Positions 8,163 to 42,596 of a DNA stretch of 64,000 bases are shown here, one piece after another. The DNA lies in NCBI GenBank assembly GCA_009103225.1, contig RHPI01001517.1, positions 198,505 to 262,504 of the forward strand, given 5' to 3'. The position numbers and the translations under genes are program-made. Each line of letters opens with the position of its first letter. The stretch's first letter is position 1. This DNA comes from Chlorokybus atmophyticus. Its lineage: Eukaryota; Plantae; Mesostigma and Chlorokybus algae. The notes under the pieces were generated by a model, which saw only the letters and a program-made list of their open reading frames with translations, was not told the origin of the DNA and searched no databases.

Positions 8163-8606
8163 ATGTTTATGCTTGACAACATGCATGTTCTATGCATATG
8201 CCTAAATGCAATTGCATGTTGCGTAACCTAAACGCCTGCAGCCTTGGCCTTGCCTTGCTGTCCGTTGCAGGGGTACAAGTGCGTCACTGGCGGATGTGGA
8301 GGCGGGGCTGTAGAGCACTGTCCGGTCTACATCCGCACTGCTCACACCCATCAACGCACCTGCCAGCTCTCACGACCACCTGTGCCTCTTCCCTTCCCTC
8401 CTTGCGCACTCCCTGCTTGCCCCAGATATATTTGGGAGCTGGCGCCAGCTGTCGACAACCACGTTCACCTTGCATAGCACATAGCATATAGCATAGCCCC
8501 GCCCCTGGCCTATTCTAGCCGTTAACTTGTGTCTAATGTGTTAGGTTGGTGTTGGCTTGTTAAGGCTGTGCTTGCTCAGAACTTTTCATTTATATATCCT
8601 ATACAT
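8163..8606 (+). repeat. 5' pseudo-LTR (direct repeat) of the Penelope-like element
   Basis: Aligns by eye to 12192-12646 (ATGCTTGACAACATGCATG...CTCAGAACTTTTCATTT) with scattered substitutions. Confidence 0.9.
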
Positions 8607-11818: not shown

Positions 11819-12191
11819 TACCAGGATCTATAGCAAGCTGAGAGAACCACGGTTCGCTGGCATTCCTGCGAGCACCGCGCCCAGATTCCAACATTGCACG
11901 CAATGCAAAGATGAATGTGGTAGTGTCACAATGCTTCAGGTTCATGCGCTTGTCCACATATCATGGTCATTTTGTGTAGGAGATGCACCGGCTCCTGCAG
12001 GACATGACCAACATGGGCTACAACAGACGACGCCTCATCTTCAAGCTGCGAGCGGTGATGTAGAACAAACCAATTCACATGTTTGATTGCACCTACAGAC
12101 ACTTGTTCACGTTGCTCGTGGCTGACCCTGCTGGGAGGTGAGGTAAGTGTCTGAGTTGCTAGCGGGGAGCATGAAGTACTATGCCCGCTAC

Positions 12192-12646
12192 ATGTTCATG
12201 CTTGACAACATGCATGTCCTATGCCTATGCTTATATGCAATTGCATGTTGCGTAACCCTAATAATCGCCTGCAGCTTTTGGCCTTGCATTGCTATCCGTT
12301 GCAGGGGTACAAGTGCGTCACTAGTGGCTGTGGAGGCGGGGCTGTAGAGAACTGTCCAGTCTACATCCGCAATGCTCACGTCCATTAACGCACCTGCCAG
12401 CTTTCATGACCACCTGTGCCTCTTCCCTTCCCTCCTTGTGCACTCCTTGCTTGCCCCTGGTATATTTAGGAGCTGGCGCCAGCTGTCAACAACCACGTTC
12501 ACCTTGCATAGCACATATAGCATAGCCCGGCCCCTGGCCTATTCTAGCCGTTAGCTTGTGGCTTGCTGTGTCTAATGTGTTAGGTTGGTGTTGGCTTGTT
12601 AAGGCTGTGCTTGCTCAGAACTTTTCATTTCTATACCCTATACATG
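12192..12646 (+). repeat. 3' pseudo-LTR (direct repeat) of the Penelope-like element
   Basis: Direct repeat of 8163-8606, directly downstream of the RT C-terminal region. Confidence 0.9.
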
Positions 12647-12940: not shown

Positions 12941-15900
12941 ATGGCTCTCGCAATGTCTTCCGCTATGTGCATGCCCACCACCACTGCCAAGACCGTCTCC
13001 GCTAGGCCTGCTCTGAAGCTAGTCTTAGGACAAAAGGTGAGAGACTGTCGTGTGAATATCGACAGGTACGGTAATGTTTCTTCTTCATTTGTCACTGACT
13101 GTGGTTGCCCCTCCTGGTTACAGGCCTCCCCTATGCAGAGCGCTTGGGCGTCTTTCGCTGGTGCACGCTTCTGCCTCTCCTCAGGCAGCAAGAAGAACAT
13201 AAACCGCCTGGTCACATGCGCCAAGCCAGCTGAGACTAAGCTCCAATATACGTAAGTTGTTGCTTGCTACGACTATTGTGTTGCTCTCTGCCTGTGATGT
13301 GGATGTTCAGTGCACGTGCGTCTGCAAAATTGTGTATAACGCATGTGTAACATGCCATATCCATGTCCATGTGTATTCACACATGCATTGTGCACACCAT
13401 CATTTTATGCTTGTGTCTGTCACGTCCATCGTCGCAAATTTTACACGGTGACTGACTAAGGACTGAGGGACTGACTGGTGCCTGAGCCTGCCTGAGCCTG
13501 CCTGTTGCTGCCTGCAATATTACTTTTGGACTGTTGGGTTTGCCGTTGGCTTAAGTGGACTGACGCAGACGGCCGTGGGCCGAAAGTGGTTGTCAGTGGC
13601 ACTAACCGGCCGAGAGTTGTCAACCAGTTACCCTTTGGTCGATGTGCACAGACGGCCGTTGACCGGTAGTTACGGACAGCTGACAGCAATAGCCGGCAGT
13701 TTCTTTGCCGTTACACTGCTGTTAATATGTGACCCTTGCCGTTTGCCAAAAGTTGGCAATTCTTGCCGTAAGCCAACACTAACATGCCATGCAGCTTGTA
13801 CAAACCTTGGACTGATTGTTTGGTCTTGCACCTAAAAGCCCACAATATACACAATGTACGGGCAGTGGTGAGAGTATGTCCACTTACAACTGAGCAGCCG
13901 ACTTGCGCATGAAACTATCCTATAACATTGAGTCTAGCTGTCGGACTCATGCGCAGCTTGTCAACCCGTGGTGCCTGCCTAAGAACTCCTCCTCAAACCC
14001 CCTCCTCCTGTTCCTCCTTCGACGAGTCTTCTGCTTCAACGCCGGAGTCATCTTTATCCGCTGCTTCGCTCGCTGACAGTACAGCGGCTACTTCGTCCTT
14101 CAGCTTGAATGTCAGCGCCTCGCCGTGCACGCGCATGCGCTTGATGGTCGCTTTGAGAGTGACCACCTGCATTTGGTAATGCTGTAAGAGTGGCGTGCTG
14201 CCAGAGGACTAGCCCATCAGCATACACACGCTTACCTCGTCTTCCGCTTTGTTGCACTCCGCCAGGCAGACAGTCAGCCTGCCGCGCTGCTCTTGGTTCA
14301 CTCTGACCAACATGGCAATCTGCAAGCATACTGCTTAATTACCGCTGGAAACATAAAACTAGGTCATAGACCCGTTCGTTTGACTCCGCAGCTTCTCTTT
14401 TGCGACTTGTGAGCTCCCGCAAGTAGAAATAGGCTGTGCATTTGCGAGATTGGTCATGCTGTTCATGTGCATGACACTGGAGGTTGTGCATGAGGGTGTG
14501 CATGTCGTATTGACAATGTATGTCAAGTGCAAGATACTTGAGGCTGTGCATGTGCAAGATAAAAGAACCCTAGCATGTGGCATTGACAGTGCATCGTAAC
14601 CCACCTTGGTTATGCCAGTCTTGTTTGGTCCCTTCAATCATGTCGCCGTGGTCGCAGCTGCTGGTGGGTCGGATTTTCTTAGAGGCAGTATTGTGGTGTG
14701 CCTTTGCCCACTCGGATGGGGAGCCCTGTAAGATATCGCCCGAGTCACTGTTGTCATTGGATGTGCCCTTGGTAGTCTTGGTGGGGTTTGACACCGAGGA
14801 CACCCCTCCGGCACCCTGCCCGCCCTGTGCGAACATGGAATTCATCCCGGACCTCGACCACAATGCCCACTACGCCCCTGGCAGCGCCGCCAACGATCTT
14901 CCAAACGCCACATACCCTCGGCATCACGCCCCTGTAAGGGCATAGCTTGGCGGAGCTATCAATGGTGTTTTCATGCGCAGGGGGACTGACATTGCCAGAG
15001 TTGTCAATGGTACGAACTGCCATTGCCATTGTACAAAGGTACCATTTCAATGGTACCTTTGTATAATGCCTATACCTTGGGGCAAAGGCATCTTCGTACC
15101 ATTGAAACGGTTCAATCAGAATATATATATATATATATATATATCCAGACTCACCCTGGACGTTCAATGGCTCGATCGTACCATTATAATGGTACGACGG
15201 AGCCAGTGACTGGCGGCCAAGTTTCCCGCCTCTGGCATGCAGCGGTAGCGGTAGCGGTGGCGGTGGCGGTGGCGGCGGCGGCGGCGGGTGTGCGTGTTGC
15301 TGGATATGATGCAGGTTACATTGGCGACACCTGTGTCGACGTTAGTAGTGAGATATGGGAGTCCTTTGTCCGTATTGCCACATGCGCTTCGCCACACGCA
15401 GCTCGGTCTACATGCACATTATTAGCAGCAGGGTGTGCAAGCAGATCAAGCTGTATGTCGGCCAGCGTCCATTACAGTACGATGCGGGTCATGTTGAACC
15501 GGGGAGTTCGATCCAGGATGCTCACATGCTTGATGCTGAAGGATTCCTTCAGGAGACACACGCACAGCAGCAACAGGAGGAGGAGGAAGTGAACGAGGGC
15601 TTTCGATGTGTGCGTGTGCCTGAGAAACCTGTGGCACGCCAACATGGAAGTGGAGGCGTCCCTTCGCACGCGTCGGAATCCAGGTGGTATGGCTCTGAGC
15701 ATGCTCTTGCAGTGGCATTCGTGCAGTGCAACAACGGCCAAGGCCTGTCGGCCTCCGACATGGGGCGGATCATCAAGTGCATCCGAAATGCACACTTCCT
15801 GACGGAAGACCTCCAGTGGGAGACCGGTGTGCATGCGGCCAGCTACCTCCGGACCACGATTGCTTTCTCTCAGTCTGAGGTGTGTTCACGGTGTGCGGTG

Positions 15901-18900
15901 CATGTGCTTCAACCATCAGAGCCATGTCACATATGCACATGCGAGTGTGCTGCCGTATCAGAACTACGTGACGGCTGACCTGCGCAAGCCCGGAGACCCT
16001 GAGGATCAGGACATCTGCGTCACATATATGCCGGCCAAGGTCTGTGAAATGCAGTACCTAATGCAGTATCGATGCAGTATCTATTCTGAGGCCAGCATAG
16101 TAAGTAATGCTCTTGGTCGGAGCAGGTATGGCTCGCGCGGTTGTATGGCAATCCACATGCCGCCAATGGCTTCAATCTCCAGTACACTGGTGACGAGCAC
16201 AGCTTTGGCCATCCTTCCACGGGCGATTGGTGGAAGGATGTGGAGGTGGATTTGAGGAGAGAGGTGGGGGAAGCGTCCTACTTGGCGCCTGCCATTCTGT
16301 ACAGTGACAAGACCACGCTGGACAGCGCGGGCAAGCGCTCTGGCTACCCTCTGATGGCATCGCTTGCCAACTACAGTTGGGACATGTATGCTAGCAACAT
16401 GGGGGTTGTTATGATAGCGCTTCTGCCGGTGGTTCACGCAGTGGCCGGGCATCCCACCTGGGCGCAGGGCAAGGAATCGTTCTCCATTCGGAAACGTGAG
16501 ATTTTTCATGACGCTTTGAATGTAGTGTTAGGGGATGTGAAGCGGGCGAGTTGGGAAGGTCTGCAGCTCATCGACCCGAATGGCATCGAGCGTCGTGTGT
16601 TTCCCGCGCTTGCCAACTACATCAGCGATTTGCAGGTAGTGGGCATGAATGGTTGTAACCGGATGCAGCCCGCCAGCAAACAGTGCATGGAGGATGTTGT
16701 CAGTAGAACATCTGAGTTTGTCGTGTTGTAGGAGACTGCCACACTCGCACGCACTGTGTCGGGCAACCAAACACGACATCCTTGCGATGTTTGTCTCGTC
16801 ACCAAATCAGATCTGTTGGAGATGGATGAGGACCGGGAATTGAGAACCGAGGCCTTCTACACACCAGCAATACGTCAGCTGCGGGCGGACCTGCATAGCG
16901 GTGTTAGGAATGCACGCCAGACAGCCAAGGCTTTCAAAGAGCAGCACTCCATGCATGTCGAGGAGGTAATGGTCAAATTACCGGCATTCGTGAGGATGAA
17001 TGGCTTTCCGTGAAACCAGGCAATGTGGTTTGGCAACAGAATGCACTGTGGGGTTGGCGACAGTCGCGGGTGCCGGGAGCTGACTGCTACTCTCGTCTTG
17101 CCCCTGACGCAATGCATGTGCTGGGAGGCATCATTGACCACCTGCTTGCTGCTGTGTACGACGCCGCGAAGGAACGAATGCGTCCATCCACGAGACAGAT
17201 TCTGCAGGCCAGGCACGTCTTTGGTGTTGCTTTTGTGTTGAACACAAAAGCCAACAACACGTGCTCACGAGCAGATGTGCACAGGCTGAATGCATGCAAG
17301 GCGACTCTGCGGGTTTCGCACTTCAAGGCACCCACAAGCACAGTAGATTTCTTCCTGTCCGACCACTCCTTTCAGGTGGTGGAGAAAGTGGCGGTGCTGC
17401 AGCTGCTGCCGGTCCTCGCAGACGGTTTGCTGCTCGACAGTGAGGGCAACGATTTCTTCACCATTGCTGCCGCATCGCTTGCCCAGTGGAACAAGAAGTT
17501 GCTGAAGGCGCATGAACACACAAGAGAGACCCTGACCACAGCCGACAACGAGCTGGCTGCCTTCAAAGCTGCAGTGTTGCATCCGCTGCTGTCGTCATAT
17601 TTTGCACAGAAGTCAGGTTGGAAGATCGAGAAGATGCATCAGCTCACTCATTTTGGGCCGGCAGTTGTCAGCAGTGGACACCCAGATTGGTTCAGCGCCA
17701 ACCGCATGGAGCAGACGCACGCCCAAAATATTAAACGGTGGGCGCGTGGTGGCAACAACCGGGACTACCAGGCACGTATCCTGAAGGCATGGAGCTGTGC
17801 GGAATATGTGAGAGAGGATGGCATGGTCGTGGATCCCGAGATGCGCTCGGTCATGGCGCAGGCAGTGCTGTAATGTCATGGAGAAGACGGACAAGTTGCT
17901 ACGGATGGATGTGCTGACAAGGAGGGAGTCCAGCCCGTACTGGAGCGGATCTGCGCGTAGCCGCCAAGTCGCCTTGAAGACTCCATTTGCCGACAAGCTG
18001 CCTGCCACCCTGGACAGCTGGTTGAGGAGGGAACAACTGGAGTTGGCCGACGGGTGGCGTGCTGTTCGCGTGGTGAACGGAGGCGCAGCGGTGTACATGA
18101 CATCAGGAGTCAGCATGGCGCGCGCAACTGGGATGTTCCATGGGCGGCCTTGGTTCTCTACACTTGAGTTGGAAGGTAATGAGGACGGTGTGAACGTGAC
18201 GTGGTGGGCTCAGGCACTCTTTTTTTTGCGCGTGGTGGTGTGGGGTGGTAGCGGCGAGCGCGTGTGGAAGGAGGTCGTGTTTGTCCGCTGGTACATGAAG
18301 CTGGATGTGACGAGCGACACAAAGTGCATTGCTCTGGAATGGGAAAAGCGTCGAGGCGGTCCACATCTCGATGTCGTGACTCTGGAGCAAGTAAAAGGCA
18401 TTGTCCAGCTGCTCCCCATGTTTGACAAGGACAGCGCCCGTGTACAAGAGGGCAAGTATTGGGTGAACGTTCACTGCACTTCCACGTGACACATGTACTT
18501 GTCTCACTACTCTCAGTTTGGAGCATATCAGTCAGTTAGGCATTGCTAATCGTATGCTAAGACTTTTGCATGTGGACGTGTACAATACCAGGCAGCTGTC
18601 ACTGCACAACTGTCACCACAATCAAATGATCCATGCAACATTCAACAACAAGTCCGCCGTGTGGCATTAAGCATCAATACAGTGCACCACACTCAAGCCT
18701 CATAGTTCCATGACACAGGAGGGTAGTCACAGCGCATATCCATTGTTTCAAGCATGAGACGCCCTATGCACTCCGCCATTGCGGGAGGAACTGCATTCGC
18801 TATGGAAACGGCCGAGGTCATCCATGGCACTCCCAGCGCTGTTTGCCACGCAGCAATGCCGCCCCTGGTGCTTGGAAGGCCATAGACCGGGTACATCTGC

Positions 18901-21900
18901 TGTGGCGCGTTTGATGTCACGATTGTCTTCTTCGCGCTAGCGGACAGGTGCGGCGATAGCAGTCCAACTGCCTTGCCCGCGTGCGAGCAGCGTGCTGGTG
19001 GGGTAGCTACCACTGGCTGTGTCTCAAACAGACGGTGTCGGAAAGTTGATAGGCCAAACATCGTGCCACAAAGGGACGGATTGGGTCTGAATGAGGAAGC
19101 TGCTCCTGGCACATTCTCAATCACAAACTTGACCTGGCTTGCAAGCAGCAGACGTCGGACGAGCAGTATCATATGCTGGTGTCTCCAGGATGTGCCATGT
19201 GCCGCCCGTTGAGGTGCCGGGATAGCACCTGAATAGGCCTGGCATGGTGGACTGGCCCAGATGAGCTCGTACTCGCTCAGCTCTCCTGCACTCAGGGTGC
19301 ATACATCGCGGTGTATGAAGGGCAGCGGGTACTCAGAGGAGGGACTTATGTCCATCCCGGTCACGTCAAAGCCTGCGTGGTATAGACCGCCACTGGCACC
19401 GCCACCGCCGCAGAATAGGTTGAGTGCCCTTGGTCTGCGTGTGCGTCCCAGCTTGTTGTCAAATGGCGTGTATGTGGTCAAGGCTGGCCGCGGTGCTGGC
19501 CAGGGGCTAATAATGATGCCGTCCGGGCTTACTTTGCGACTGACGTTCTCCCCTCCGGCGCGCAGAACATGGCGTGCCCCGTCAACTGATGTGTACGCGA
19601 ATACGTTGTGCCCTTTGAAGTTGATGGTTTGTGGTCGATCACCGTCATCGAATACTATACGGTGCTGCCCTGCAAAGACATTTTCCATTGCACCATGCAT
19701 ATATGATGCGTTCTCAATCTCGCACGCCACAAAGCGATGCTGACCTGACGCTTGCTTGAATGATTCCACAACGCCCGCATACCATTCCCCATCCAGCGGC
19801 CAATGCACCATGACACTCACACCGATCAGCTGCTCGCATCCCAACTTAACTGCGTTCCGCAGCCGATGCAGTGCGCTGTCCAACGGTCGATGGTCTGCCT
19901 CCTCTACAGCGGCCAGGGGATGGAACTGCCCACGCCCACACCGTGGAAGACTGCTCTGAATGCGACAACAGCTTCAACATGCATAACATGCAGTGATACC
20001 TTGCGGTCCACTCTGCCGAATTACCTCCACAGCATCTACCACATGTTCACTAACCACATGTCCTGGTGTTGTCTATGTGGAGAAGCGCATGGGTTCCCCT
20101 CGCCACTCGAAGCATGAGCGCGAGCACGATTCGCACACGCACTGCACGCAATGGAAAAACTCGGGTTCCTTGCACAGCACTTGGCCGAGGCGGCAGCCAA
20201 ACACGTCGACATTGTGTGTGGTGTGATGCCAGCAAGCAGCACTAAAACCGTGGCACACTGTCTGCACTCGCTGGCATTCGGTCAAGTGTGCTCGCATTTG
20301 CTACCTACGGCCATTTGCACATACGTACGCATTGCATTGTGGGCACACCAAGCATGGTCTCCTAGGTGAGGGTGATTCAACTGCTGCCGCCGACATCATG
20401 AAAAATAGGAATCGGCACGGCTGCCCACAAACTGAGCGAGACTTTAGGGTATGGGCATCAATTTAGGGTTGCCAGCTTACGAACCCTAAATGGGTCAAAC
20501 TTCAAGTGAAGCACGACTGTACCTTATACGCTATTGCAGTACCATGCATGGTACTACATCAACATGAATGGTACTCTATCTGTTAATGGTACTACAGTAC
20601 AAGGATACTCGCATACTACCACGATCGTAGAGTAATACTGTGCTGTCATGCCATGGAACCCAGAGCGCTGTCCGAGTTTGTTGCTGTCAACCACGCTCTA
20701 AACCAGCGAGGTATGCAAGCCATGCACTGACTCATGCGCCGGGCAGTCATCATACACATGTACAGCCAATGCTTCTAACAACAGCAGATCTCTGGTGCAC
20801 CATGCACCATGCTGCAACTATACATGTACCTACATGGTTCACAGGAAGCCAACACAAAACTACAATACATGCACAATTGGCATCAAGGCGGGGGCCAAAT
20901 CACCGCCGACACGTTGGCGTCTTGCATCAGGCGTGGCGACCAAAACGGGTGAGGTTGCTTGCAGAATGGACACGCTTGTAGATTCTTTGATTTATTTGCC
21001 ACAGTCTTCTGATGTGCTATGATGCAGACATGGCACATCGCTTTCTTGCAACAGGGCGTCTCCCCATCCGGGGGGGGGGGTGGCTCTTCAATGCGACAAA
21101 TCAGCACACATGGTGCACGCGGGTGTGCAAGCTGCCTCTGCCACCAAACTCTGTTATCGCGTCGCAGGCGTAGCGACTCCCATCTGAATGGCGCAGCATA
21201 ACGCTCCACTGCCTGCTCGATCACCTGACGCCCATCTGCCGCCATACACCACCTGCTGGTCTTGGTGGTCTCGTCCAGCATGCGTTCATCCAGGCCCTCG
21301 ACATGGCTGTCGTCACTCGTGTACTCCCCCGCATCGTCATTTTCTTCGAGCTTCCACAGAATCAGCTCGACGTGCCGTATGACATACAGCCACTGCCAGC
21401 CAAAGCATGCCAAGTACAGCTCGAATGGTTTTACTTGCCACCCAGTATGTTTGCTCAGGTAGTGGCACACATCTCGACCCGCATTAGTCGACATCGACAG
21501 GTACATCTGCTGCAGCAGGTCGAAGTTCTGCTCCGCAGATAGCTCTTGCACATTGCCGGGGTGCTGCGGCAGCAACAACACCATCATATCGAGGACGGCG
21601 AGGGGCAACAACGTACTACGGATGGCCATATCGTGTATGGGTTCCAACCACGGCCAATCCCCAGAGGTCTGTTTAGACCGCATTCTCCGCGTTTGCTCCC
21701 ACTTATTGCAAACTTTCGTCACCCACCTCGAGGCATGCCGCATGCGGTGATGCAGCGCGTCTTGGGCGTACTGTAGGGTGATCAACTCCTTTGCACTACG
21801 AGTCAGCCCCCCAAAGCGTCTGCGCGTCGGTGCTTTGAGCTTAGGCAGCTCGTGCCGCACCGGCTGTCTCTCTGGACGATGCTGAGCAGCCACTTGACGC

Positions 21901-24900
21901 TGTAAACCCGCCTGTGCCTACTCAGGACACACAGTCAGCCCCAGTGAGGCTTCAAGGCGCTGTGCTTCTTCTAATGTTGTAACGATGCCTCACCTTTCCT
22001 TTTTTGGTCCTGTCAGCGTCCTTTGTTCCAACAACCTTCTTCTTTTTTTTTTTGTCACCCTGCACATCCTGGCAGGCGCTCTCCGTGGCACTGTCACTCA
22101 GAGGAGGTAAGGCGTTATCTTCTTGCTCCACAGCCTTGCGCTTGTTGGTTGCCTCCCGTTCCTCCACGACCTCATGTTGCTTCATGAGGTCGAGCATGAA
22201 GCCTTTGTCTTTCAGCGCAGCTTTCAGGACACCTCGATCAATCTCTTTACCAACAAGACAGGCTGGGATCAATGTGGCAAGCTTAGAGGGAGAGGGCGAG
22301 CTACAGCTGCTTCTTGATGGAGATGCCTCCGGATGGTCAGAGTGCGGTGGCAAGTGAGTCTCCGCGGCAGGAAGGGAGGGTGCTGAATTGGGATTGCGAG
22401 CATGTGGCTGTGGTTGAGGGGAGGCAGGATGTGCAGAACACTCGGCTACTTCTTGCCTAGCACACGAAGGCGAGGCCTGAGGCGTTGGCGCAGCACTCTG
22501 GGTCACAGCCGGTGGTAGCGGGGAATTGGCAACGCCATGCCGCCACTCTCCGATCAGGTGTGTTACCTCCGGTGGCACTTCATGCATAGGCCACGACCAC
22601 TGTTCGGTGCTTGCAGGCTTGAGGAGCCAAAAGTGTGCTTCTGGCTCATCAGGAGCAGTGTTGCCCACCACCAGGACTGAGTTGGGGGCTTCTTTATTTC
22701 CAACCCAAACTGCGCTGCCGGGCCGTGGCACCCACTCCCCATGCTCGCGCTGAACGGTCACGCAGCCAATCAACAAGCCCAGCTTGTTGGCAAACATGGT
22801 CATCTGCAGGTGCTCGACGTACACATCTTTTCTCCGCACGATCTGTCGCACCTTGGCCATGGCTAGGTCAATGTTGCAGTTGATATCAGCCAACATGGTC
22901 GCAGGCAGTTTGTCGTAATACTGCGCCATCTCTCCCGCGGCACCAGTGGCTCTGCAGAAGTCTAGGATTCTGCTCGCCACGCCTGCATCGACAGCCTTGG
23001 CGGTGATTTTGCGGAGAGTGTGCCCCCTGCCGTCGTCGTCCATGGTGTCCAGCATGGCCCAAAATCTGCTCGAGCTGGGGCACTTGTGATCATCCAGGAC
23101 ACTTTGCGCTATGGATGGCCTGGCGCGAAATACACAATGGTAGAAGCAGTTACCATCCGTTGGCGCATTGAAGTGGTCCCATGAGGCGAGCTGGCCACCT
23201 AGCATGACTGATGGCCGGCGGGTTGCGGCCAGCTCCTCTGATGACTCGCTGGCAGGTGGTGACCCCTGCTGCATGCGCATACAGCACTCACATGGTGTGT
23301 CCAACTGTGGACGGCAAGAGTCATAGTGACTGATAAAGTACCTAAGTTTGGGGCAGACTGCCGGCTTCAACTTGCAGCGGGTGGGGTAAGGTAGGTGCAG
23401 AAGCCACATCGGTTGTTGCATTGTGCTGTGGTCTCGCCGGTGGCGGCAAGAAGGATTGTTGCCCCGCAATCACCGGTGCTGCTCGTGGAGGGAATGGCAG
23501 TGCACGAAGGACTGGTGCCGCGGAAGGTGGTTGCGCTCTGGCTGGGAGGGGAGCATGAGCTGCAGGTGAGACCACTTGTGCATGCAGCAAGGGGGGCCTG
23601 TATACAGGACCCAGGATAAGATGGCTCACAATGTTGCAAACGACAAATATAAGCTTATGCAGTGCCTGACGCATTGTTACCAAGGCACGAGCATAAAAGA
23701 CAGCGACGTACCTCAATGGCCCGTGGGCTGCATGGAGCAGGGAAAGCCATGGGGGCTGACAAGGTGGTATTGGCTGCACTCTCCCCGCCACCCTCAATGG
23801 CAGACTCGTCACGGAGCTCTTGAGCCATGGGCACATCATGCGCCACTGCCCCAATGGACATGTCGGGATTCAACAGGCCAACATGCATGTTAAACTGATG
23901 CCGCATTGCCGCCGCGCCCATCAGCAAGTGGGATTGAAGGACCAGTTGATGGGATTGAATCCAGGCTTGCATAGGAGCTCCAACAGGACTTAGTGCACTG
24001 TGGTGCTGTCAACCAATCACATGTGGGTTAGCTGCATGCTTGCGACACTGCAATTGCAATAGTCAACTGCGTCACACCGTCATCAGTTGGTTGCTTCGAA
24101 CAGTCACTGCGGCATTGCTGGTTGATGCACGAATGGTTGCATGGACTGCGTCATTGCTGGTTGATGCACTATTGGTTGAATGCCGGACGCATGGCCACGC
24201 GCTCCTGTGCTCAAACCCAACCTACTTCGTTCGGCACGCGCGCGCGACTTCGCACGCTCACGCACATCCTAGCATGGAAAGGTAGGCATGCATTGGAGCC
24301 GACATTGCAGTCAACATGCACAGCGAGATTGGCAACAACATACCGCCGCCCAGCTCTGTCTATCTGCTCTTGCTTCCGCAATGTCGGCTTGACTGTAGGG
24401 TGGGTATGGGTGAATAGTGGAGGCCTGCAGCCACGCTACATATATCACATGGACTGCGCTAAAAAACAAATTGCTCTTGCAAGGAAATGCATGTGACTGT
24501 TGAGCGTACCTCTGCATTCCTTTGTGCTTGTTCCCACAGCCGCAACTGGTCCCGCATGGTTCTGACAAGGGGCTCCAAGGACTGCAGCTCCTGATCCACT
24601 CCCTGTTGCAGAAAGCGAGCCACCAAGCAGCTCTCTGTGTGAAGATGGTCTTTAATGGCTTGCCTGCTGGTTTGTCCAATGTTGGTGATGCATGTTGGAC
24701 AGCCCCATTGCTGACGCCTGCCATGATCCATGACGTGGCGACCGGTAGTAGCTGGCTTCGCTGCTTGAACTCTTACGACCACAACTTCTCGCAAGATGTG
24801 CCACGCCGCCGCCGCCGCCGCCGCCTCCTCCGACTCCTGGTCCTCCGCCTCCTAGTCGAACCCAGGCCCATCAAGCCTGACATTCGACCCGTCATCGACC

Positions 24901-27900
24901 TGGTGCCCCTGCGTGCCATCATCCGGCCATCAATGAAGCGTGTTTGGGTGAGTGCATGCTAACTCCCATTTGGGCTGATCGAGCAATGCCTCTGTCGTAC
25001 CATGGATGGTACGACAGAGCCATTGTACGGCAATCGCTGGGGTTGGACGAGAGATGCCTCTGTCGTACCATAAATGTTACGACACAACCATTGGTAACAA
25101 TGGTTGTACGAAGCATGCATGGCACGAATGCATAAGTCGTACCATCAACCATAGGAGCAAGGACGCACTACAAGTGCGACTCTAGTGCGGGACTCTAGAC
25201 GTTCAAAACCGCCTCATTTTCGTTTTCGCGCCTCATACATTCGGGCGGGCCAACCGGCGGCGGCAGCGTTGGAGGCGGCAGCGCCACTTACAGCTAAACA
25301 GGCGGCACCCGACTATCAGTTGGAGAGATGCCTCGTGGTCCATCCGTAAGTGCACCTCGTCGTGGAGGTCGGCGCCAGTTGTCCACATTGCCCCCAGTGT
25401 TCAACCAGGCAACCGTCGCCAACCAATCGCAGCAAGACCCCGCGCTAACGCCCAGCACATCACAACAACTCCACCTGACACCGCAGTCGCAAGGGCAAGC
25501 TAGACTGCATGCGTTCTTGATGCACTGTGCACGTTGCTTCTTGCTCAACTTCTAACTTGGATGCTTGCTTCTATCATGACTAGCACAGTGACTCACTGCA
25601 TGCGTTCTGGATACACTGTGCACGTTGTTCTTCTTTTGCAACTGTGAGGGTTGCATCTTTCATGGCTGGCAGCATGACTCATGTGGTTGTGCTTGCAGAG
25701 GGTCGATTGGAACCCCCAACCCAAACGCATTTGGCCGTGACGTGGCAACCTCGGCCGTCAGCAACCCTTCCCCAAGCAAGTGGAAGATTGGCAACGAGGT
25801 AAGCACTGTGTGACACTGTGACACTGTGTGTATGTGTGTAACGGATTGTTCTTCTGTGGACAGCATTTGCGAGATGCCGTCGTTGAAATCATAAACGGCC
25901 ACTGGGTAGAGAGCCACGTTTATCCCAAGGAGGACACTATTCGTAACGTCATGTGTCAGGTGCTGTGAATGCTTCATGACCGCACTGCACCGTGACACTG
26001 ACCAACCTGCCCGTGACAGGTAGTTGGCTTCGACCATGACGACGAGGCCGATGCGGCCAAGTTCTATGAGGTGTACTGGACTCCCAAGGAGTGCCCCTTC
26101 CACTGGAGTGTCGCCCTGAAGAAAGCTACGCAGGTCCGGTCTGAGAACGTCACCAAGATCAAGCATGTCCTTGAGAAGGAGTACAAGTGGACACTGTTTA
26201 ACAGCAACAAGCGCAAGTGAGTTGGGTCCCTCACCACCATGTCTGCTATGCAACACTGCCTTCTTACTCAGCCTCCATACACACGTACTCATCTCGCCTA
26301 TTGTAACCGATTCAATCAGGCACATCGACGCCCTAATGGACCCCGAGACCCAAAAAGCCCAGATGCGCAACGCGCTCCAAAGTAAGTCACAGGCACTATT
26401 CTAGCCTGGTGCAGGCTCAACTTGAACTATCTATTTCGTGACTAATGCCTTGTCGGTATGACTGTCGCAGACAAGTCATGGCGGAGATTTGAGGTGACCG
26501 ACACTGCAGACCCGGAGCGGAGGAGATACATCCATGAATGGGGCAATCCCATAATCTGGCAAATGATCGTGCAATGCTGGTCTTACGCCGTCACTACACC
26601 TGGTCGCCGGCAGCTGACAGTCAACCACCTCGCATACCTGTTGCTTACGGTGAGCACTCTGGACTCCATCATTAGCAATTCAGGAACGCTATAGCCCCAA
26701 ACTACAGGCTTGCAGACGCGTTGCAGTGAATAGTGGCTTTCGATGCCACTAAGACATGCCTGTAAACTACGCAGGTGGAGCGCATCCTAAAGGGCAAGGA
26801 TGGAGACCCTCTCCTAGCTGCCAGCATAGACACACATGAAGAGTACCTCAGCGAAATCAACACCATGATCATGTCAATGAAGCGGGAGATGAGGCAACGG
26901 TACGCAGCCCTCCAGCCATTCACCCTTGTGAAACGCCGCACTGCATCTTGTGTCGAATACCTGAAAGATCCCAATCGGCGCCGGCCGCAAGAGACAGCAG
27001 CTCGTGACCCGCTCGCTGAGGCAGAAGCGGCATTTGATTGGCTGGCACAACCGTTTGAGGAGGAAGAGCAAGCTCCGGCGTCTCCTCCACAGGCCCCAGC
27101 GCGTGGTGCTTTGTTCCGTAGTGACGACACCAGCGATGATGGAGAGGAGCTGTAGCGCAGTTGGTAGTCCGTTTAGCCGGTAGTGTACATAGCTACAAGG
27201 CTCTTGTGACTGAGTGTTGTGCATCTTAAACCAGCTCAGTCAATCGTCATTATGCTCATGCACATCAATACTTGCATCCCTATGATATACAACAGAACTG
27301 CATTCGAGTCACATAATCGAACTACAAGCCTTGGCAAGTGACTGAGAGACACTGTACACATTTCAGGTACATGTACACAGCACAGGCACATAACAATGCT
27401 GGAAGTCAGTGACAGTCGCGTGTAGTCAAGCTATGCAAATACATATGACGACAGTTAGGCATTGGTCTCCTTCAGTTGTTAAAGAATGCCTTATTTTGTC
27501 GATAACTACCTAGTTGGTGCTAGTGAATTAGGCTTAGTCGCCTGCGCTGGACTGGTGTGTAACCTGCAGGTGCCTGTCACATAGGCTGAGTCACCTAGGT
27601 AAGACTGATGTGTAACTTACAGGTGCCCGTTGATTAGTTGTAGTCACCTAATAAGGCCTGATGTGTAACTAACAGTTGCCTGTAAATTACACAAAGTCAT
27701 TTGTTAAGGCCTGGTGTGTGACTAACAGGTGCCTGTTCATTCTATAAAGTCACCTGTTAAGGCCTGATAGGTAATTAACAGGCGCCTGTTAGTTAGACAA
27801 AGTCAACTGTTAAAAACTAAATTGCAACAAAAAGGGCCTTACAGTAACGAAAGTTACTATTAGGTCCCTGTATCAAGATTACAGGTGGCCTGAGCCACGA

Positions 27901-28269
27901 CAGTCTAAATTAGCGTCCTCAGGTGCACGGCCGTAGCCAATATTTAGTCGGCCGGCAGGGAAAACATATTGCGACGATGTCTATGCCCAAAACTCTGTTT
28001 GTATATGTACACATGTGCATGTGCAAATGTGCACACGCATTTGTTCGTCACAAGCAGCATGCCACTCTCGCCCCACCTGATACTCGTGTGGTTCTGTGTA
28101 CAGCTACATCTGCTCCCAGTGCGGCTACCTGTTCATTGAGAAGTCCGAAGGAAAGAGGTTCGACGACCTGCCAGAGGACTACAAGTGCCCTCGCTGCGAT
28201 GCCCCAAAGGAGGCCTTCGAGATGTCTGACGGTGACAGCACTGAGTCTCCTAATGTCCAGAGTGGTTGA
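12941..28269 (+). CDS. Plastid-targeted rubredoxin-like protein, join(12941..13036,13124..13251,28104..28269); intron 2 contains the giant transposon
   Basis: Exon 1 MALAMSSAMCMPTTTAKTVSARPALKLVLGQK is transit-peptide-like. Exon 2 ends CAA TAT AC|gtaagt and exon 3 begins tacag|C TAC ATC TGC, giving in-frame TYICSQCGYLF...FDDLPEDYKCPRCDAPKEAF. This has two CxxC motifs and the rubredoxin F.DLP..W/Y.CP.C pattern. Confidence 0.9.
13993..14845 (-). CDS. Transposon accessory gene A, multi-exon, coiled-coil/acidic, unknown function
   Basis: GT-AG exons IAMLVRVNQEQRGRLTVCLAECNKAEDE| and VVTLKATIKRMRVHGEALTFKLKDEV...EEQEEGV*. Upstream low-complexity exon ~14580-14845. Divergent from the transposase; start uncertain. 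Confidence 0.5.
15355..18489 (+). CDS. Plavaka-family transposase, intron-containing, with N-terminal C2H2 zinc finger; frame break near 17871
   Basis: N-terminus CPYCHMRFATRSSVYMH. Core HPSTGDWW, PAILYSDKT...GYPLMASLAN, NYISDLQ|E, HQLTHF...G...FS...EQTH match recalled Plavaka transposase motifs. The C-terminal PWFS...WWAQALFF...VFVRWY domain is in a shifted frame. Confidence 0.8.
18693..20399 (-). CDS. Tudor domain-C5 cytosine DNA methyltransferase fusion (transposon cargo), possibly with N-terminal Cys-rich exon
   Basis: Tudor: LIGVSVMVHWPLDGEWYAGVVESFKQAS|GQHRIVFDDGD, with an in-frame ~75-nt intron. MTase motifs: I LNLFCGGGG, IV WASPPCQ, VI IENVPG, VIII RHRLFE, X IANAVPP. The upstream exon structure (19950-20399) is tentative. 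Confidence 0.88.
20883..21899 (-). CDS. RING-type zinc finger exon/ORF (transposon cargo)
   Basis: C-terminal CVLIC...PCCKKAMCHVC...ACPFC RING-like Cys/His pattern in a 336-aa open frame. Confidence 0.7.
   Translation of the reverse strand, partial: RQVAAQHRPERQPVRHELPKLKAPTRRRFGGLTRSAKELITLQYAQDALHHRMRHASRWVTKVCNKWEQTRRMRSKQTSGDWPWLEPIHDMAIRSTLLPLAVLDMMVLLLPQHPGNVQELSAEQNFDLLQQMYLSMSTNAGRDVCHYLSKHTGWQVKPFELYLACFGWQWLYVIRHVELILWKLEENDDAGEYTSDDSHVEGLDERMLDETTKTSRWCMAADGRQVIEQAVERYAAPFRWESLRLRRDNRVWWQRQLAHPRAPCVLICRIEEPPPPPDGETPCCKKAMCHVCIIAHQKTVANKSKNLQACPFCKQPHPFWSPRLMQDANVSAVIWPPP
21952..23285 (-). CDS. OTU-like cysteine protease domain exon (transposon cargo)
   Basis: APTDGNCFYHCV (OTU catalytic D-x-x-C box), YVEHLQMTMFANKLGLLI, and downstream EAHFWLL (catalytic His-like), followed by a Pro/Ser-rich and basic tail. 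Confidence 0.75.
23345..24900 (-). CDS. Upstream exons of the putative ZnF-OTU-RING gene (C2H2-like finger plus coiled coil)
   Basis: WGCPTCITNIGQTSRQAIKDHLHTESC followed by LQQGVDQELQSLEPLVRTMRDQLRLWEQAQRNAE|gt. Further GT-AG exons (...SPRAIE|gt, ...GSLPQTQ|gt) have a phase compatible with the OTU frame. Start not resolved. Confidence 0.5.
25328..27155 (+). CDS. Transposon accessory gene E, multi-exon, unknown function
   Basis: Consecutive GT-AG exons: ...SKWKIGNE|HLRDAVVEIINGHWVESHVYPKEDTI|VVGFDHDDEADAAKFYEVYWTPKECPFHW...|HIDALMDPETQK...|KSWRRFEVTD...LLLT|VERILKGKDG...DGEEL*. Conserved in the second copy. Confidence 0.65.
27547..27811. repeat. Subterminal tandem array, five ~53-bp units
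   Basis: Unit starts at 27601, 27653, 27706 and 27759 (plus a degenerate first unit). Consensus AAGGCCTGRTGTGTAACTAACAGGTGCCTGT-(variable)-AGTCACCTGTT. Also present inverted at ~51730-51995. Confidence 0.85.
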
Positions 28270-29545: not shown

Positions 29546-32500
29546 ATGAAGAAGATAGGCACTTCTCGTGTGAATCCTGCTTTCGGCTGTGCAGCTGTTT
29601 TGCTCTTGCATGCATGTTGTCTAGCTCGCACTGTTTCTGGGCAGGCCACAACGGTAAATGACAGCTGCTTTTCCTATTACAGCACTTTGCCTTTATGTTG
29701 ATCTCTTTGCACTGTGGCAAGCTTGCATGTATTGCTTGCATGCATATATAAACTGCATGGCTGTGTGGGTGCTTCAGAACAAGTATTGCTTGCGCAGGGG
29801 CTGCCAACAGCGGTGTTTGCCTTTGGAGACTCCATCGCCACCTCATACCCAGACAGCATAGGTACGTAGTTGTGCGGTTTTCTGTTTTATTCACCGAGAA
29901 GTATTTGCACAGTGTTTGCCATTCATGCTCATGCTTACCAGCCTCAGGCTAGTGAAGAAAGTTTGCAATCCAGACTTGCTATTTGCTTGCTACTTACTTG
30001 TTTAACAAACGGTCATGCTAGGAACAGTGACCCACCGCAAGTATAAACTAGTCTGCATACCACGTTTAACATATGCTACAGCTTAGAGTAACAAACCAAG
30101 AGTTTCTAGACCTATGCCTTCGCCGTTGTTGTTGTTCATCGCCGTCGTGATTTGAATTAGTCAACCTTGCTCTGCTCTCACCCTCATCTGTGTCGCTCTG
30201 CAGCCAACATCTTAGGCTCCACCTCCGGTACCCCGCTCCCAACTGTTGTGGACTCACCTCCCGCTGACGGGGGCGTGAACACATACGTCACGGGCGCAGA
30301 ATTCTCTTCCAATGGAAGCTCACCAGACAGCCTCAATACACAGGTACGGAGCGTATATGTTCTTCATCGCGTTGGCTATTAAGGTTGGGTTGGGTTGATG
30401 GTTGGGGGAGAATCGTTTGGTCAACTAGGTGGGGACCTTCCTCAGCCTGCTTAGAGGTGGATACCTCCAACCCACGCAGTTTTCTTCAGCTGTTTACGTC
30501 ACTGGCACGGGCTCGGATGCATTGGCGGCAGCAGTGTCAACGCCTGGCTTCGATATTGTGGTATGAAAACGCCCGCAAACCCGCACACACCCGCACACAC
30601 AGATGCAGGCACACACAGCCGCACACAGACATACCCTTGTATGCACGTGCGCACACAGACGGATGCACATGCGCACTCACACACACACACATGCGCACGC
30701 ACGCGCGTGCATGCGCACGCAAGCGCATGCACACGCACACCTTTGCAACATGTGTCAGCTTGCCAACTGTTTTACGTTACAGGCGTTCGTGTCAGATGCA
30801 GCAACGGCAATGTTAACCACCTTAAGAACGCTATTTGCTGCCGGGGCGCGCGTGTTTGTGATCATCGGCGTGCCTGCACTGGGCTCCAGTCCTGTGTATC
30901 AACAAAACGAGCAACCGAACATCACCATCAATGTTGCTGCTGAGGCCGTAAATGCGGCCCTGCAGATTGTCATATCCATTTTCAACAACGAAAGCTCCAC
31001 TGCAAACATCGTATACGCCGACACCTTCTCTACCACTTTTGCCAACCCAAACGTTTGGGATGACAACACAGCAACAATCAGCAGCCAGTTTGCTGCTACG
31101 CTCGCTTCCCTCACTTTCTCAGGTTTTGTTGGGTGATGCACACACGCACGCAATAAGTTTTGAAACACAAGTTGTGATGTGTTATCCTTTGTTGTGGCCG
31201 TGACTTGCTGTTTGTCCACAGTTGATGCTGAGGGTTTCACTGTGGCTTCGCCCCGGACTCTTAGCGATGCACTAAGGTTTGGCGTGGATCTGGTTGTGTC
31301 TCGCGTCTCATTGAATGTAAGCGCTCAGCCACCCACACACGTGTTCCCCGCAGGTGAGTACTACCTAGCTTACCAGTATTATATGCAGACACGCATGCAC
31401 ACATGTTATTCGTGTCGTCCCATGCACATGCACACCACACACATACACTTACCATGTTTTGGTATTGCAGGTCGCATATATGACGGTCGCGCCCTTGGTT
31501 TCCTTACAGATGCAGATTTGGCGTTCACCCGTGTGGAGATCGACACATGTGGGCTTTTCGGCCCCCTGTTCGTGCGCAACGCCAACTCATATTTCTTTAT
31601 GGTCAACGGCACAGCGCGCATCGGCCTCGCCAACGGGCTGAATGCATTCGCGGACCCGTTTTCTAACACAACGTCCATCACGTCGTTGGACTCGTTTATT
31701 GTGCCTGTGGGCTGGCCTTTCTTCATCTATGCGTCTGGAGGCGGGCCGGTGGTACTTGCAGTGTTCCATAAGTTCACAACCAATGAGGTAAGAGTCCGTC
31801 AACTTGACTGGAGTTTCCTCGGCAACGCTGCGCATTTCAACTTGGGGTACCCAAACTTCCTGGTGGCTGCAGAGTACAACCTGACCAGGTACACACACAT
31901 ACATGCTGGTGCACATGTATGCAAGCAGACATGCACTCATGCATGCATGCATGCACAGGCACACACGCGCGTGCACACAAACAACACGCAGACATGACTC
32001 AGCTCTGCTCTCTATTCACTGACTTAGTACTGGTGCTTGCGTTTAGGGCTCAATGGGCAGCCTTCAGCCCCAACCTGCGCTTTGCCTCTGGCGCTGTCAC
32101 GACAGACCCCACTGTTTGCGCCAACAACCCGCCCCCGCCTCCCGTGCCAGGAAACGGACCGGACGGCTCACCCCAGGTTGGTAAAAATGTTTGTGCTATA
32201 CTACTGTATGCTGACATGCAAACGTAGTTGTGCAGTGTATCACAGTTACAGTGCAGTGGTTGGTGGCTGTTGCTGTATGTGATATGCTGTCCCAAGAGCA
32301 TTACACTATACTGCATGTGCTGTATTGCACACATGCTGGCTGTTCAATTGTACTGAGCTAGACTGCAAAACATGGCTCCATGCATACTGAGTATTGAGCA
32401 GTCTACACACTGTAGGGCATCGTGTGCAAGCGCGCATGTGCTTGTGCCAGTGTGTGAATGTGTACGTGGTTGCCACATCATATACCTCGAGTGTTGTCGC

Positions 32501-40848: not shown

Positions 40849-40908
40849 CAACTNNNNNNNNNNNNNNNNNNNNNNNNNNNNNNNNNNNNNNNNNNNNNNN
40901 NNNNNNNN

Positions 40909-42339: not shown

Positions 42340-42596
42340 TATTGTTCACATGTACGCTGTGTGTAATGTAGCCCACCAGGTGGTAACCATCTCCCCTGAT
42401 TGTGGCAAAGGGCCACTTGCAACACTGCAGCACGCCTGCAACCTGCTGCTGTGTGGTATTCTGCAGCATGCTGTTATTGTTCACATGTACACGCTGTGTG
42501 TGTAACTGCAGCCCACGAGGTTGTAACTATCTCCCCAAATTGTGGCAAAGTGCCATTTGCAACACTGCAGCACTCCTGCAATCTGCTGCTGTGTGA
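42340..42596. repeat. Two-copy ~135-bp tandem duplication upstream of the glycosyltransferase
   Basis: GTTCACATGTAC...TGTGGCAAAG...TTGCAACACTGCAGCAC...CTGCTGCTGTGTG occurs twice in tandem with substitutions. Confidence 0.8.

Follow-up and report, generated by a model that had tools for sequence, protein, structure and literature searches.

Mobile elements are the usual targets of DNA methylation, although a few are known to encode proteins that erase it (fungal elements with TET/JBP), block it (VANDAL) or write N6 or N4 marks (giant transposons of algae). In the window, by which we mean the whole 64,000-nucleotide stretch of Chlorokybus atmophyticus DNA analysed here, a rubredoxin gene is interrupted by 14.5 kb that encode, among other proteins, a predicted cytosine methyltransferase, and the question is what this insertion is and what its genes might do for it. 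The explanation that we favour overall, and hold with considerable confidence, is a Plavaka cut-and-paste transposon that lies in a rubredoxin intron and carries a Tudor-C5-methyltransferase together with accessory genes that may shape chromatin.

A bounded insertion in the last intron of a rubredoxin gene

12941-28269, + strand: host rubredoxin gene, exons 12941-13036, 13124-13251 and 28104-28269, with the element in the last intron
13428-13429, unstranded: AT, the left half of the target-site duplication (TC at 13425-13426 if parsed the other way)
13430-13437, + strand: left terminal inverted repeat CGTCGCAA; alternative, the 11-bp CATCGTCGCAA starting at 13427
27969-27976, - strand: right terminal inverted repeat TTGCGACG, the reverse complement of CGTCGCAA, followed by AT at 27977-27978
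51566-56686, - strand: truncated second copy in inverted orientation, matching 22853-27976 as its reverse complement

The insertion spans 13430-27976 and is bounded by 8-bp inverted ends, CGTCGCAA and TTGCGACG, with AT on either flank, as the preliminary description had claimed. The rubredoxin exons join in frame across it (junction AC/C), and the last intron shrinks from 14,852 nt with the insert to about 303 nt without it. These exons had been taken as support for the boundaries; the in-frame joining and the location in an intron stand, but the exact boundaries are not fixed by them. The same bases can also be read as TC plus the 11-bp CATCGTCGCAA at both ends, an agreement of 13 bases, and the two parses, 8 bp with AT and 11 bp with TC, are equally good, with each boundary uncertain by 3 bp. 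Under either of them the duplication is 2 bp long, within the 2-3 bp of Plavaka (one insertion examined).

That the same element truly ends at 13427 and 27979 (11-bp CATCGTCGCAA...TTGCGACGATG, with TC duplicated at 13425-13426 and 27980-27981) is a reading to which we give somewhat less than an even chance. The 13-mer TCCATCGTCGCAA fits either end and, were the 8-bp parse true, chance would produce these additional matching bases in only about one case in 256. The ends CATCG..CGATG obtained in this way share four of five bases with CATCA..TGATG of PlavakaB, a consensus that comes from fungi only; the likeness extends to the 2-3 bp duplications of those fungal elements, and CA..TG ends are usual for the transposon clade of Plavaka (PMC12730594). 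Read from CGTCGCAA, the ends CGTCG..CGACG are unlike either fungal consensus, TGT..ACA (PlavakaA) or CATCA..TGATG (PlavakaB), both of which come from fungi only. Against the longer parse, the second copy reads ...GTATT/CGTCGCAA, with one base in common beyond CGTCGCAA, which would require a mutated or damaged tip in a copy that is truncated on the opposite side.

The second copy lies 24 kb from the full element and is 98.2% identical to 22853-27976 over 5129 bp. It stops exactly at the right terminus, in agreement with the earlier claim of a common end, and breaks off on its other side within the OTU-like exon described below, 175 bp short of an assembly gap. The left end is seen in a single full copy within the window, and no second left end is found there. 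Both ends of the full element are accompanied by short repeated motifs:

13479-13659, unstranded: left subterminal region, with GCCTGAGCC at 13480 and again at 13490, and two copies of the palindrome ACGGCCGT (13569, 13652)
27516-27813, unstranded: right subterminal array, about five tandem repeats of 53 bp

At the right end ACGGCCGT recurs at 27927 and GCCTGAGCC at 27888. The palindrome ACGGCCGT occurs four times in the whole 64 kb, each time no more than 230 bp from an element end. The left subterminal GCCTGAGCC and ACGGCCGT are candidate transposase-binding sites.

One could also suppose that no single mobile unit exists, and that a Plavaka transposase and genes derived from the host or a virus came to lie in a long intron whose apparent ends match by chance. 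We consider this very improbable. In its favour, when the right end was taken from the second copy and the upstream 25 kb was resampled with a Markov model, 28% of trials contained an 8-bp inverted match, and an endogenised viral fragment was considered, since the nearest relatives of the methyltransferase are in giant viruses. However, the match together with a 2-bp duplication arose in only 1.7% of trials, and the 13-base agreement lowers the chance further. Moreover, ACGGCCGT is restricted to both ends, the second copy stops at the terminus, the genes contain spliceosomal introns, and removal of the insert restores a host intron of normal length, 303 nt.

A transposase of the Plavaka lineage

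15355-18489, + strand: transposase gene, 910 aa, exons 15355-15879, 15962-16039, 16126-16635, 16732-16965, 17040-17869 and 17934-18489

The Plavaka lineage is related to CACTA/EnSpm, Mirage and Chapaev (the CACTA/EnSpm-Mirage-Chapaev-Transib clade). The six exons of the transposase gene are separated by five GT-AG introns of 64-96 nt, and the spliced model, which has no internal stop, encodes a weak C2H2-like finger at the N-terminus followed by a Plavaka DDE core. The earlier assignment to Plavaka was borne out by a Pfam scan, in which PF18759 was the sole family matched (E 4.5e-23, with 82.4 bits where the cutoff is 26.3). The spliced protein can be aligned over its whole length with a homologue from a liverwort; residues 122-863 align with residues 105-838 of the homologue P0004 (E 1.4e-49), the 910-aa protein being collinear with the 840-aa homologue. 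At E<=1e-3 there are 333 relatives, from liverwort, Closterium, Glomeromycota and basidiomycetes, and the closest proteins either bear PF18759 or belong to Plavaka-bearing lineages. Identity to fungal relatives is about 22-41% (22-31% lengthwise, up to 41% over a short stretch).

The conserved SD.T, D..E and C..C motifs are kept, and D..H appears to be as well; the catalytic residues are retained in SDKT, SDLQE and an aligned Glu, and the C(2)C motif is present as PCDVC. In the D..H..G block APDAMH stands in place of the HPDTLH of P0004, the first His having become Ala, and one conserved Cys following the second catalytic Asp is likewise replaced by Ala. The insertion is thus a full-length Plavaka-lineage DNA transposon of the cut-and-paste kind, with an intact transposase gene, and is probably autonomous.

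A Tudor domain joined to a cytosine methyltransferase

18696-19973, - strand: main exon of the Tudor-C5 cytosine methyltransferase, Tudor at about 19600-19847, methyltransferase domain at 18696-19442

The methyltransferase domain, METHYLTRANSFERASE, matches short C5 methyltransferases (annotated as DNA cytosine methyltransferase) at E 4e-55, and its Pfam PF00145 score is 21.7 bits, just under the cutoff of 22. Motifs I, IV, VI and X are intact, with FCGGGGA, SPPCQ, ENV and ANAVPP aligned with invariant columns; every invariant residue is retained at about 40% identity to the nearest relatives. Three of the four homologue contigs inspected are giant-virus-like and the fourth is phage, and the relatives on viral contigs number at least 447. 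The Tudor region, which has no Pfam match, matches PDB 7DE9, the PDS5C Tudor bound to H3K4me1, at E 4.7e-4 with 19 of 40 aligned residues identical, and the aromatics are retained, W and Y of HWPLDGEWY aligning with WWPMDQAYY of 7DE9.

We read this region as a Tudor domain of PDS5C/MSH6 type, a predicted methyl-lysine reader, and the gene, as far as homology can tell, as a fusion of a PDS5C-type Tudor to a complete C5 methyltransferase of the phage/bacterial/giant-virus family. The Tudor-C5-methyltransferase gene proposed in the preliminary description thus rests on homology in both halves. A virus or bacterium is the most likely source of the methyltransferase domain, which would later have been fused to the eukaryotic reader domain. 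No ATG precedes the Tudor, and an upstream exon is therefore needed, at about 20055-20281; a 75-nt in-frame intron is possible at 19670-19744.

The remaining cargo and its divergence between copies

20886-23469, - strand: OTU-like and RING-like gene, exons 21994-23469 and 20886-21917, joined frame open for 836 aa
24462-24851, - strand: ORF encoding a finger-like motif (CxxC...HxH) and a tail that resembles a coiled coil, read from the sequence by eye
25663-26400, - strand: ORF, open in both copies despite a 3-bp indel
26017-26217, + strand: ORF in the block 24353-27100
26766-27152, + strand: ORF in the region of the block 24353-27100
24353-27100, unstranded: conserved block with ORFs, 0.6% divergence between the copies against 3-6% elsewhere

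The OTU-like and RING-like exons are linked by a 76-nt GT-AG phase-0 intron (21918-21993). The first, 21994-23469, contains a weak TAZ-like Cys/His stretch and the motifs DGNCFYHC (Cys at aa 108) and AHFW (His at aa 279), separated by 171 residues. It has no Pfam match even at E 10 and no homologues; its best PDB matches are viral OTU domains, below threshold (nairovirus OTU, E 0.6), and the AlphaFold model, with a pLDDT of 39, is unusable. The second exon, 20886-21917, terminates in a Cys-rich RING-like motif with sub-threshold matches to zf-C3HC4 (E 0.34, with 11.3 bits where the cutoff is 21) and to the TRIM30 RING (E 0.25), relative to which it has Lys where a His ligand is expected and CxxxC instead of CxxC. 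A canonical RING finger (PF00097) was rejected on account of the sub-threshold profile and non-canonical ligands, and the motif is RING-like at best.

The ORF at 24462-24851, which has no Pfam match, is possibly a 5' exon of the OTU/RING gene or else a separate gene. Pfam matches were also absent for the ORFs of the block 24353-27100. Of the five gene units previously proposed, homology bears out the transposase and the Tudor-C5-methyltransferase, but the OTU/RING gene has no significant Pfam, PDB or homologue match.

Palindromic repeats form three intergenic clusters, with 19 sites of the motif against 2.5 expected:

15004-15209, unstranded: palindrome cluster 1, inverted repeats of about 46 bp on GTCGTACCAT/ATGGTACGAC, 150-350 bp before the transposase ATG
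20519-20595, unstranded: palindrome cluster 2, made up of variants of GTAGTACCAT that precede the methyltransferase gene
24972-25148, unstranded: palindrome cluster 3, with a half site and two palindromes of 40-46 bp that are close to perfect

Their position upstream of each recognisable gene is compatible with a role as shared regulatory sites.

Does the cargo serve the element, or is it passenger DNA, captured or decaying pieces of genes without a role, as in Pack-type elements? We think the latter unlikely. In its favour, no relatives or significant domain matches turned up for the OTU-like and RING-like ORFs or for the other cargo ORFs, all of which may lack a function or reflect faulty gene models; coding and non-coding sequence cannot be told apart by codon usage here; and accessory genes of unknown function are common in giant algal transposons (PMC12477816). 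In addition, the copies are young (1.8% apart), so that open frames are expected in any case and by themselves are no proof of selection. However, the methyltransferase keeps every invariant residue despite its divergence and is fused to a reader domain, a canonical in-frame intron of the size usual in this element joins the OTU-like and RING-like ORFs, and the upstream regions of the recognisable genes have a palindromic motif in common. Finally, divergence between the copies is uneven (chi-square 44.7, p 2e-11), the right-hand cargo block at 24353-27100 being five- to tenfold less diverged than its surroundings, which suggests constraint on this block.

A possible role of the cargo in chromatin

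Returning to the favoured reading, a transposon with accessory genes that may shape chromatin, we hypothesise that the ends, together with ACGGCCGT, GCCTGAGCC and the 53-bp repeats next to them, are what the transposase recognises, and that it excises and reinserts the entire 14.5 kb, often nearby, as the copy 24 kb away would illustrate. The Tudor-methyltransferase would read a methyl-lysine histone mark and methylate cytosines close by, and the OTU-like/RING-like protein, if its domains are real, could edit ubiquitin marks. Jointly, the accessory genes may set the chromatin state of the element or of its targets and so aid its persistence.

A stronger version sees in the cargo a self-contained methylation module, moved by the transposase as one unit, in which a histone-mark-guided C5 methyltransferase from a giant virus or bacterium would cooperate with a ubiquitin ligase/deubiquitinase; the module would place 5mC either on the element itself or on gene-body chromatin around the sites of insertion, in loose parallel to the Tudor/RING protein UHRF1 acting with DNMT1. 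We regard this version as unlikely. If it were true, no earlier cut-and-paste transposon would be known to bring a cytosine methylation system of its own, and viral methyltransferases might reach algal epigenomes by this route. More generally, an element that moves by cut and paste and encodes an intact C5 methyltransferase coupled to a reader would supply the missing case of a 5mC writer among DNA transposons, would connect giant-virus or bacterial enzymes with eukaryotic chromatin readers, and would offer a compact system to ask whether an element gains by methylating itself or its surroundings. The transposase, for its part, is a well-defined algal member of a lineage only recently recognised outside fungi.

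Comparison with known systems

The view in the preliminary description that Plavaka is mainly fungal is out of date, as Plavaka elements have been reported throughout Archaeplastida (PMC13519894) and dominate, as giant elements with chromatin accessory genes, a red-algal genome (10.1101/2025.02.11.637652); in a brown alga, giant EnSpm, KDZ and Sola elements carry accessory genes (PMC12477816). As for its suggestion of an undescribed element family, the concept of giant algal elements that bring chromatin genes with them is known already, but none of those described has the cargo seen here; what is novel is this cargo set inside a cut-and-paste element.

A close likeness is to Plavaka-1 to -3 of the red alga Bostrychia moritziana (with accessory genes PAG1-3; 10.1101/2025.02.11.637652), which share a Plavaka/EnSpm-lineage transposase, a size range of 14-19 kb, more than one accessory gene whose predicted domains modify DNA or chromatin, a proposed action on their own chromatin, and inverted-repeat arrays adjoining an accessory gene. 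Their cargo, however, comprises N6-adenine methylase with SET and ParB with 2OG oxygenase, none of which appeared in Pfam scans of the larger and selected smaller ORFs here, where a predicted Tudor-C5-methyltransferase and OTU-like/RING-like ORFs are found instead, in Chlorokybus atmophyticus. The giant EnSpm, KDZ and Sola-1 elements of Ectocarpus (PMC12477816) are likewise algal DNA transposons with accessory genes; one accessory ParB-methyltransferase, of N4/N6 type, is thought to modify the element itself, and a Tudor domain occurs in Gypsy-10_Ec32, but on the polyprotein of a Gypsy retrotransposon, whereas here it is fused directly to a C5 methyltransferase within a DNA transposon. With VANDAL and its VANC protein the likeness, drawn from descriptions, is one of concept only, in that a DNA transposon encodes a protein with a proposed effect on the methylation of the element's own DNA: VANDAL belongs to a different superfamily (Mutator-like), and VANC causes loss of methylation and has no sequence kinship.

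Fungal Plavaka A and B (PMC12730594) share the Pfam Plavaka transposase, the 2-bp duplication and C(2)C after the second Asp, and differ in their ends, TGT..ACA or CATCA..TGATG against CGTCGCAA, or CATCG... by the alternative parse. Some fungal Plavaka, as stated in PMC12730594 citing Iyer et al. 2014, carry TET/JBP dioxygenase genes, so that their cargo also acts on cytosine methylation, but TET/JBP removes 5mC and the cargo here, judging from its predicted enzyme, would write it. The DNMT-carrying retrotransposons of Symbiodinium and Klebsormidium also encode their own C5 methyltransferase with conserved catalytic motifs; they are LINE/DIRS elements, some with enzymes of the eukaryotic Dnmt3 type (PMC5890265), whereas the element described here is a cut-and-paste DNA transposon with a short enzyme of phage/bacterial/giant-virus type fused to a predicted Tudor domain.

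An intronic insertion with defined ends

The feature at 13430-27976 is real and well bounded, and it lies in the last intron of a rubredoxin gene. Exon 1 of this gene (12941-13036, ATG at 12941) is transit-peptide-like, exon 2 (13124-13251) has the 3' edge TAT AC/GTAAGT, and the last exon, which begins at 28104 (...ACAG/C TAC ATC TGC), carries the full rubredoxin motif CSQCG...CPRC and a stop codon at 28267-28269. Since the exons have in-frame junctions and the intron falls from 14,852 nt to about 303 nt if the insert is removed, the element is an intronic insertion. The transit-peptide-like N-terminus, together with the overall character of the sequence, points to a host that is probably a green alga. 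The preliminary description had taken these exons as support for the boundaries; their in-frame joining backs the insertion itself and leaves the exact ends unfixed.

In the window sequence, the left junction at 13430 reads ...GTCCAT/CGTCGCAAATTTT... and the right junction at 27976 reads ...ATATTGCGACG/ATGTCT..., which together give an 8-bp terminal inverted repeat with AT flanking each side, as first described. CGTCGCAA is found four times in the window: at both element ends, at the end of the second, inverted copy and at one site elsewhere. With the right end held fixed by the second copy and the upstream 25 kb resampled, an inverted match of 8 bp arose by chance within that interval in 28% of the resampled sequences, and an 8-bp match together with a 2-bp duplication in 1.7%. 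The identical bases can be read equally well as CATCGTCGCAA, an inverted repeat of 11 bp, and a duplicated TC, boundaries that we regard as possible if somewhat short of likely: the 13-mer TCCATCGTCGCAA is compatible with both ends, and under this parse the termini are similar to CATCA..TGATG of fungal PlavakaB (PMC12730594), but the second copy reads GTATT/CGTCGCAA, contrary to it and in keeping with the 8-bp repeat. The element ends are placed to within 3 bp. The palindrome ACGGCCGT has only 4 sites in the 64 kb, all near the ends of the element or of the second copy (two at most 230 bp from the left end, one at 42-49 bp from the right end, one at the corresponding place in the second copy); GCCTGAGCC is similarly distributed, and the placing of both motifs ties the two ends together. 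Zero exact matches to the right terminus turned up in a scan of metagenome contigs.

A six-exon Plavaka transposase

The ORF at 16108-16728 matches Plavaka (PF18759, E 4.5e-23) and zero other Pfam families, as had been anticipated for the transposase, and by its transposase the element belongs to the Plavaka lineage. Among 1.84 billion representative proteins searched, 333 were relatives at E<=1e-3; the sole one above 50% identity is a 134-aa fragment (70%) on a 552-bp metagenome contig without context, and the others, at 41% identity or less, come from a liverwort, Closterium, Diversispora and a basidiomycete. A protein-guided scan of metagenome contigs for the transposase yielded zero matches. 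A seeming in-frame stop at 16729-16731 proved, by tblastn with the relatives' proteins, to be the AG of a 96-nt intron, and the spliced model has six exons with canonical GT-AG sites:

15355-15879, transposase exon
15962-16039, transposase exon
16126-16635, transposase exon
16732-16965, transposase exon
17040-17869, transposase exon
17934-18489, transposase exon

The introns measure 82, 86, 96, 74 and 64 nt, and the product, 910 aa with zero internal stops, aligns in one segment (aa 122-863) with a liverwort protein (aa 105-838; E 1.4e-49). The SD.T, D..E, C..C, D..H..G, Glu and K..H positions are kept, Ala replaces one conserved Cys, and from its sequence the gene looks functional. An insertion of ~24 aa relative to all aligned homologues (17200-17290, inside exon 17040-17869; LQARHVFGVAFVLNTKANNTCSRADVH) could represent either a loop particular to this lineage or one more in-frame intron, the sixth. 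A weak tblastx chain at 59.7-61.9 kb pointed to another transposase gene, which tblastn left unsupported, and the lead was rejected.

A truncated second copy and neighbouring features

The second copy (51566-56686) is the reverse complement of 22853-27976, with 98.2% identity over 5129 bp, and its homology ceases at the right terminus of the element, in agreement with the sequence-only reading. Its inner break falls in the middle of the OTU-like exon and is followed by ~175 bp of unrelated sequence and then by a 934-N assembly gap (56862-57795); because this gap comes 175 bp after the break, the truncation could in part stem from the assembly. Elsewhere in the window, nothing is similar to the left 9.4 kb of the element. 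The 91 differences between the copies are spread very unevenly (chi-square 44.7, p 2e-11), with 17 in 24353-27100 (0.6%), against a divergence of 3% in 23.1-24.35 kb and of 6% in the final 375 bp. A 246-aa minus-strand ORF is open in both copies, a 3-bp indel notwithstanding, and the pattern suggests constraint, or gene conversion, on the block 24353-27100. The right ends of the full and truncated copies face each other over 23.6 kb of host DNA (27977-51565), an arrangement consistent with a local hop or with aberrant transposition.

A short way upstream of the rubredoxin gene there is probably a further mobile element: direct repeats of ~450 bp (8160-8606 and 12189-12645, 90-97% identical, ~4.03 kb apart) bracket plus-strand ORFs (9141-11116) that have RT-like motifs by eye, and these ORFs at 9.1-11.1 kb gave zero Pfam matches. 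Two 89-nt direct repeats (42367-42455 and 42507-42595) are 89% identical and 140 bp apart. Runs of N mark assembly gaps at 642-678, 40854-40908, 50907-51196 and 56862-57795, the second and third with long (GA)n microsatellites on both sides. Two further features were annotated:

31164-31994, plus strand, ORF whose product has a Cupin_1 domain (E 1.6e-7); probably a germin-like gene of the host
63729-63800, plus strand, tRNA gene (Rfam RF00005, 65.6 bits)

The Tudor-C5 methyltransferase

The Tudor-C5 METHYLTRANSFERASE ORF (18696-19973, minus strand) scores 21.7 bits against Pfam DNA_methylase, just below the cutoff of 22, and has more than 1000 homologues (best E 4e-55), in whose alignment all invariant columns are retained, including FCGGGGA, SPPCQ, ENV and the C-terminal A(I/V)PP. 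We assign the predicted enzyme to the short, prokaryote-type C5 methyltransferase family. Its N-terminal stretch matches PDB 7DE9, the Arabidopsis PDS5C Tudor domain in complex with H3K4me1 (E 4.7e-4, 19 of 40 residues identical), and both halves of the Tudor-C5 fusion named in the preliminary description are borne out by these matches. The ORF has zero ATG 5' of the Tudor domain and therefore needs an upstream exon; a candidate exon would join in frame via an 83-nt GT-AG intron. A further in-frame GT-AG intron, of 75 nt, may interrupt the Tudor domain itself, and the Tudor piece on the 3' side of this possible intron is too short for a PDB match by itself. In CpG depletion and substitution spectrum, no methylation signature differing from the flanks was seen.

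Named matches to the methyltransferase are bacterial 'DNA cytosine methyltransferase', one close relative lies on a phage contig bearing a terminase, and at least 447 relatives are on viral contigs. Three relatives sit on compact contigs that lack introns, encode topoisomerase II, RNA polymerase Rpb1, DNA polymerase B or kinases, and look like giant viruses. The closest relatives, on contigs L002 (8803-9858) and also L004 (10001-11317) and L006 (10001-11116), are in giant-virus-like surroundings. An MBD insert is present in several viral homologues, and in some giant-virus-like relatives the methyltransferase is joined to a methyl-CpG-binding domain (PF01429), a reader-writer fusion that arose there with another type of reader. 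These relatives suggested an endogenous giant-virus fragment, a reading that we dropped, since the element has introns, inverted ends and a Plavaka transposase.

The OTU-like and RING-like gene, remaining cargo and cis elements

The ORF at 21955-23469 (minus strand) carries DGNCFYHC (Cys at aa 108) and AHFW (His at aa 279), with the spacing expected of an OTU protease, and matches to the OTU-like motif expression in the window are confined to the two copies. Pfam gave nothing for this ORF, even at E 10, homologue searches with the whole ORF and with residues 70-300 were empty, as was a viral-contig scan, the best PDB matches, nairovirus OTU domains, are sub-threshold (E 0.6), and a single-sequence AlphaFold model of the region was unusable (pLDDT 39). 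The ORF at 20886-21917 is Cys-rich at its 3' end, where zf-C3HC4 (E 0.34) and a TRIM30 RING (E 0.25) both match below threshold and the ligand spacing of the RING-like stretch is non-canonical. A 76-nt GTGAGG...GTAG phase-0 intron joins the two ORFs into an 836-aa open frame, which supports the single ZnF-OTU-RING gene proposed earlier; all its domain matches are sub-threshold, and the names OTU and RING are conjecture.

Domain searches found zero domains in 13.4-15.3 kb and 23.5-27.2 kb, and a codon-usage score, with the confirmed exons as its training set, failed to tell coding ORFs from non-coding ones. Chaining splice sites for the longest open model gave chains that looked plausible on either strand; being uninformative, the approach was dropped. 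A ~46-bp palindrome built on GTCGTACCAT/ATGGTACGAC was observed 19 times against 2.5 expected, and inside the element it forms three short intergenic clusters, which we read as putative shared regulatory sites:

15004-15209, palindrome cluster upstream of the transposase
20519-20595, palindrome cluster upstream of the methyltransferase gene
24972-25148, palindrome cluster upstream of the OTU/RING gene, possibly also of a divergent gene

Near the right end there is an array of about five 53-bp repeats. The cargo may constitute a reader-guided 5mC writer together with a ubiquitin module, and might benefit the element.

Comparison with known elements

Plavaka elements had been described to us as mainly fungal, a view now overtaken by reports across Archaeplastida (PMC13519894), in Auxenochlorella, as giant repeats in Amoebidium, and in the red alga Bostrychia, where three families of 17-19 kb make up about a third of the genome (10.1101/2025.02.11.637652). 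Accessory genes are known from several of these and other elements: Bostrychia Plavaka carry three (one combining N6 methylase and SET, one combining ParB and 2OG oxygenase domains, and a third whose function is unknown; 10.1101/2025.02.11.637652), TET/JBP genes are found in fungal Plavaka and in other transposons (PMC12730594), and giant elements of the EnSpm, KDZ and Sola types bring accessory genes in Ectocarpus, where the authors report the first Tudor domain of a mobile element, on a Gypsy retrotransposon (PMC12477816). Retrotransposons with C5 methyltransferases are known (PMC5890265), and DNA transposons bearing DNMT are cited from marine viruses. In a literature search of incomplete coverage, we found neither a Tudor-C5 methyltransferase nor OTU/RING candidates described for any cellular cut-and-paste element. 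Comparable to the palindrome clusters here, inverted-repeat arrays adjoin an accessory gene in the red-algal Plavaka (10.1101/2025.02.11.637652), and it is its cargo that sets this element apart within the giant algal transposons carrying chromatin genes.
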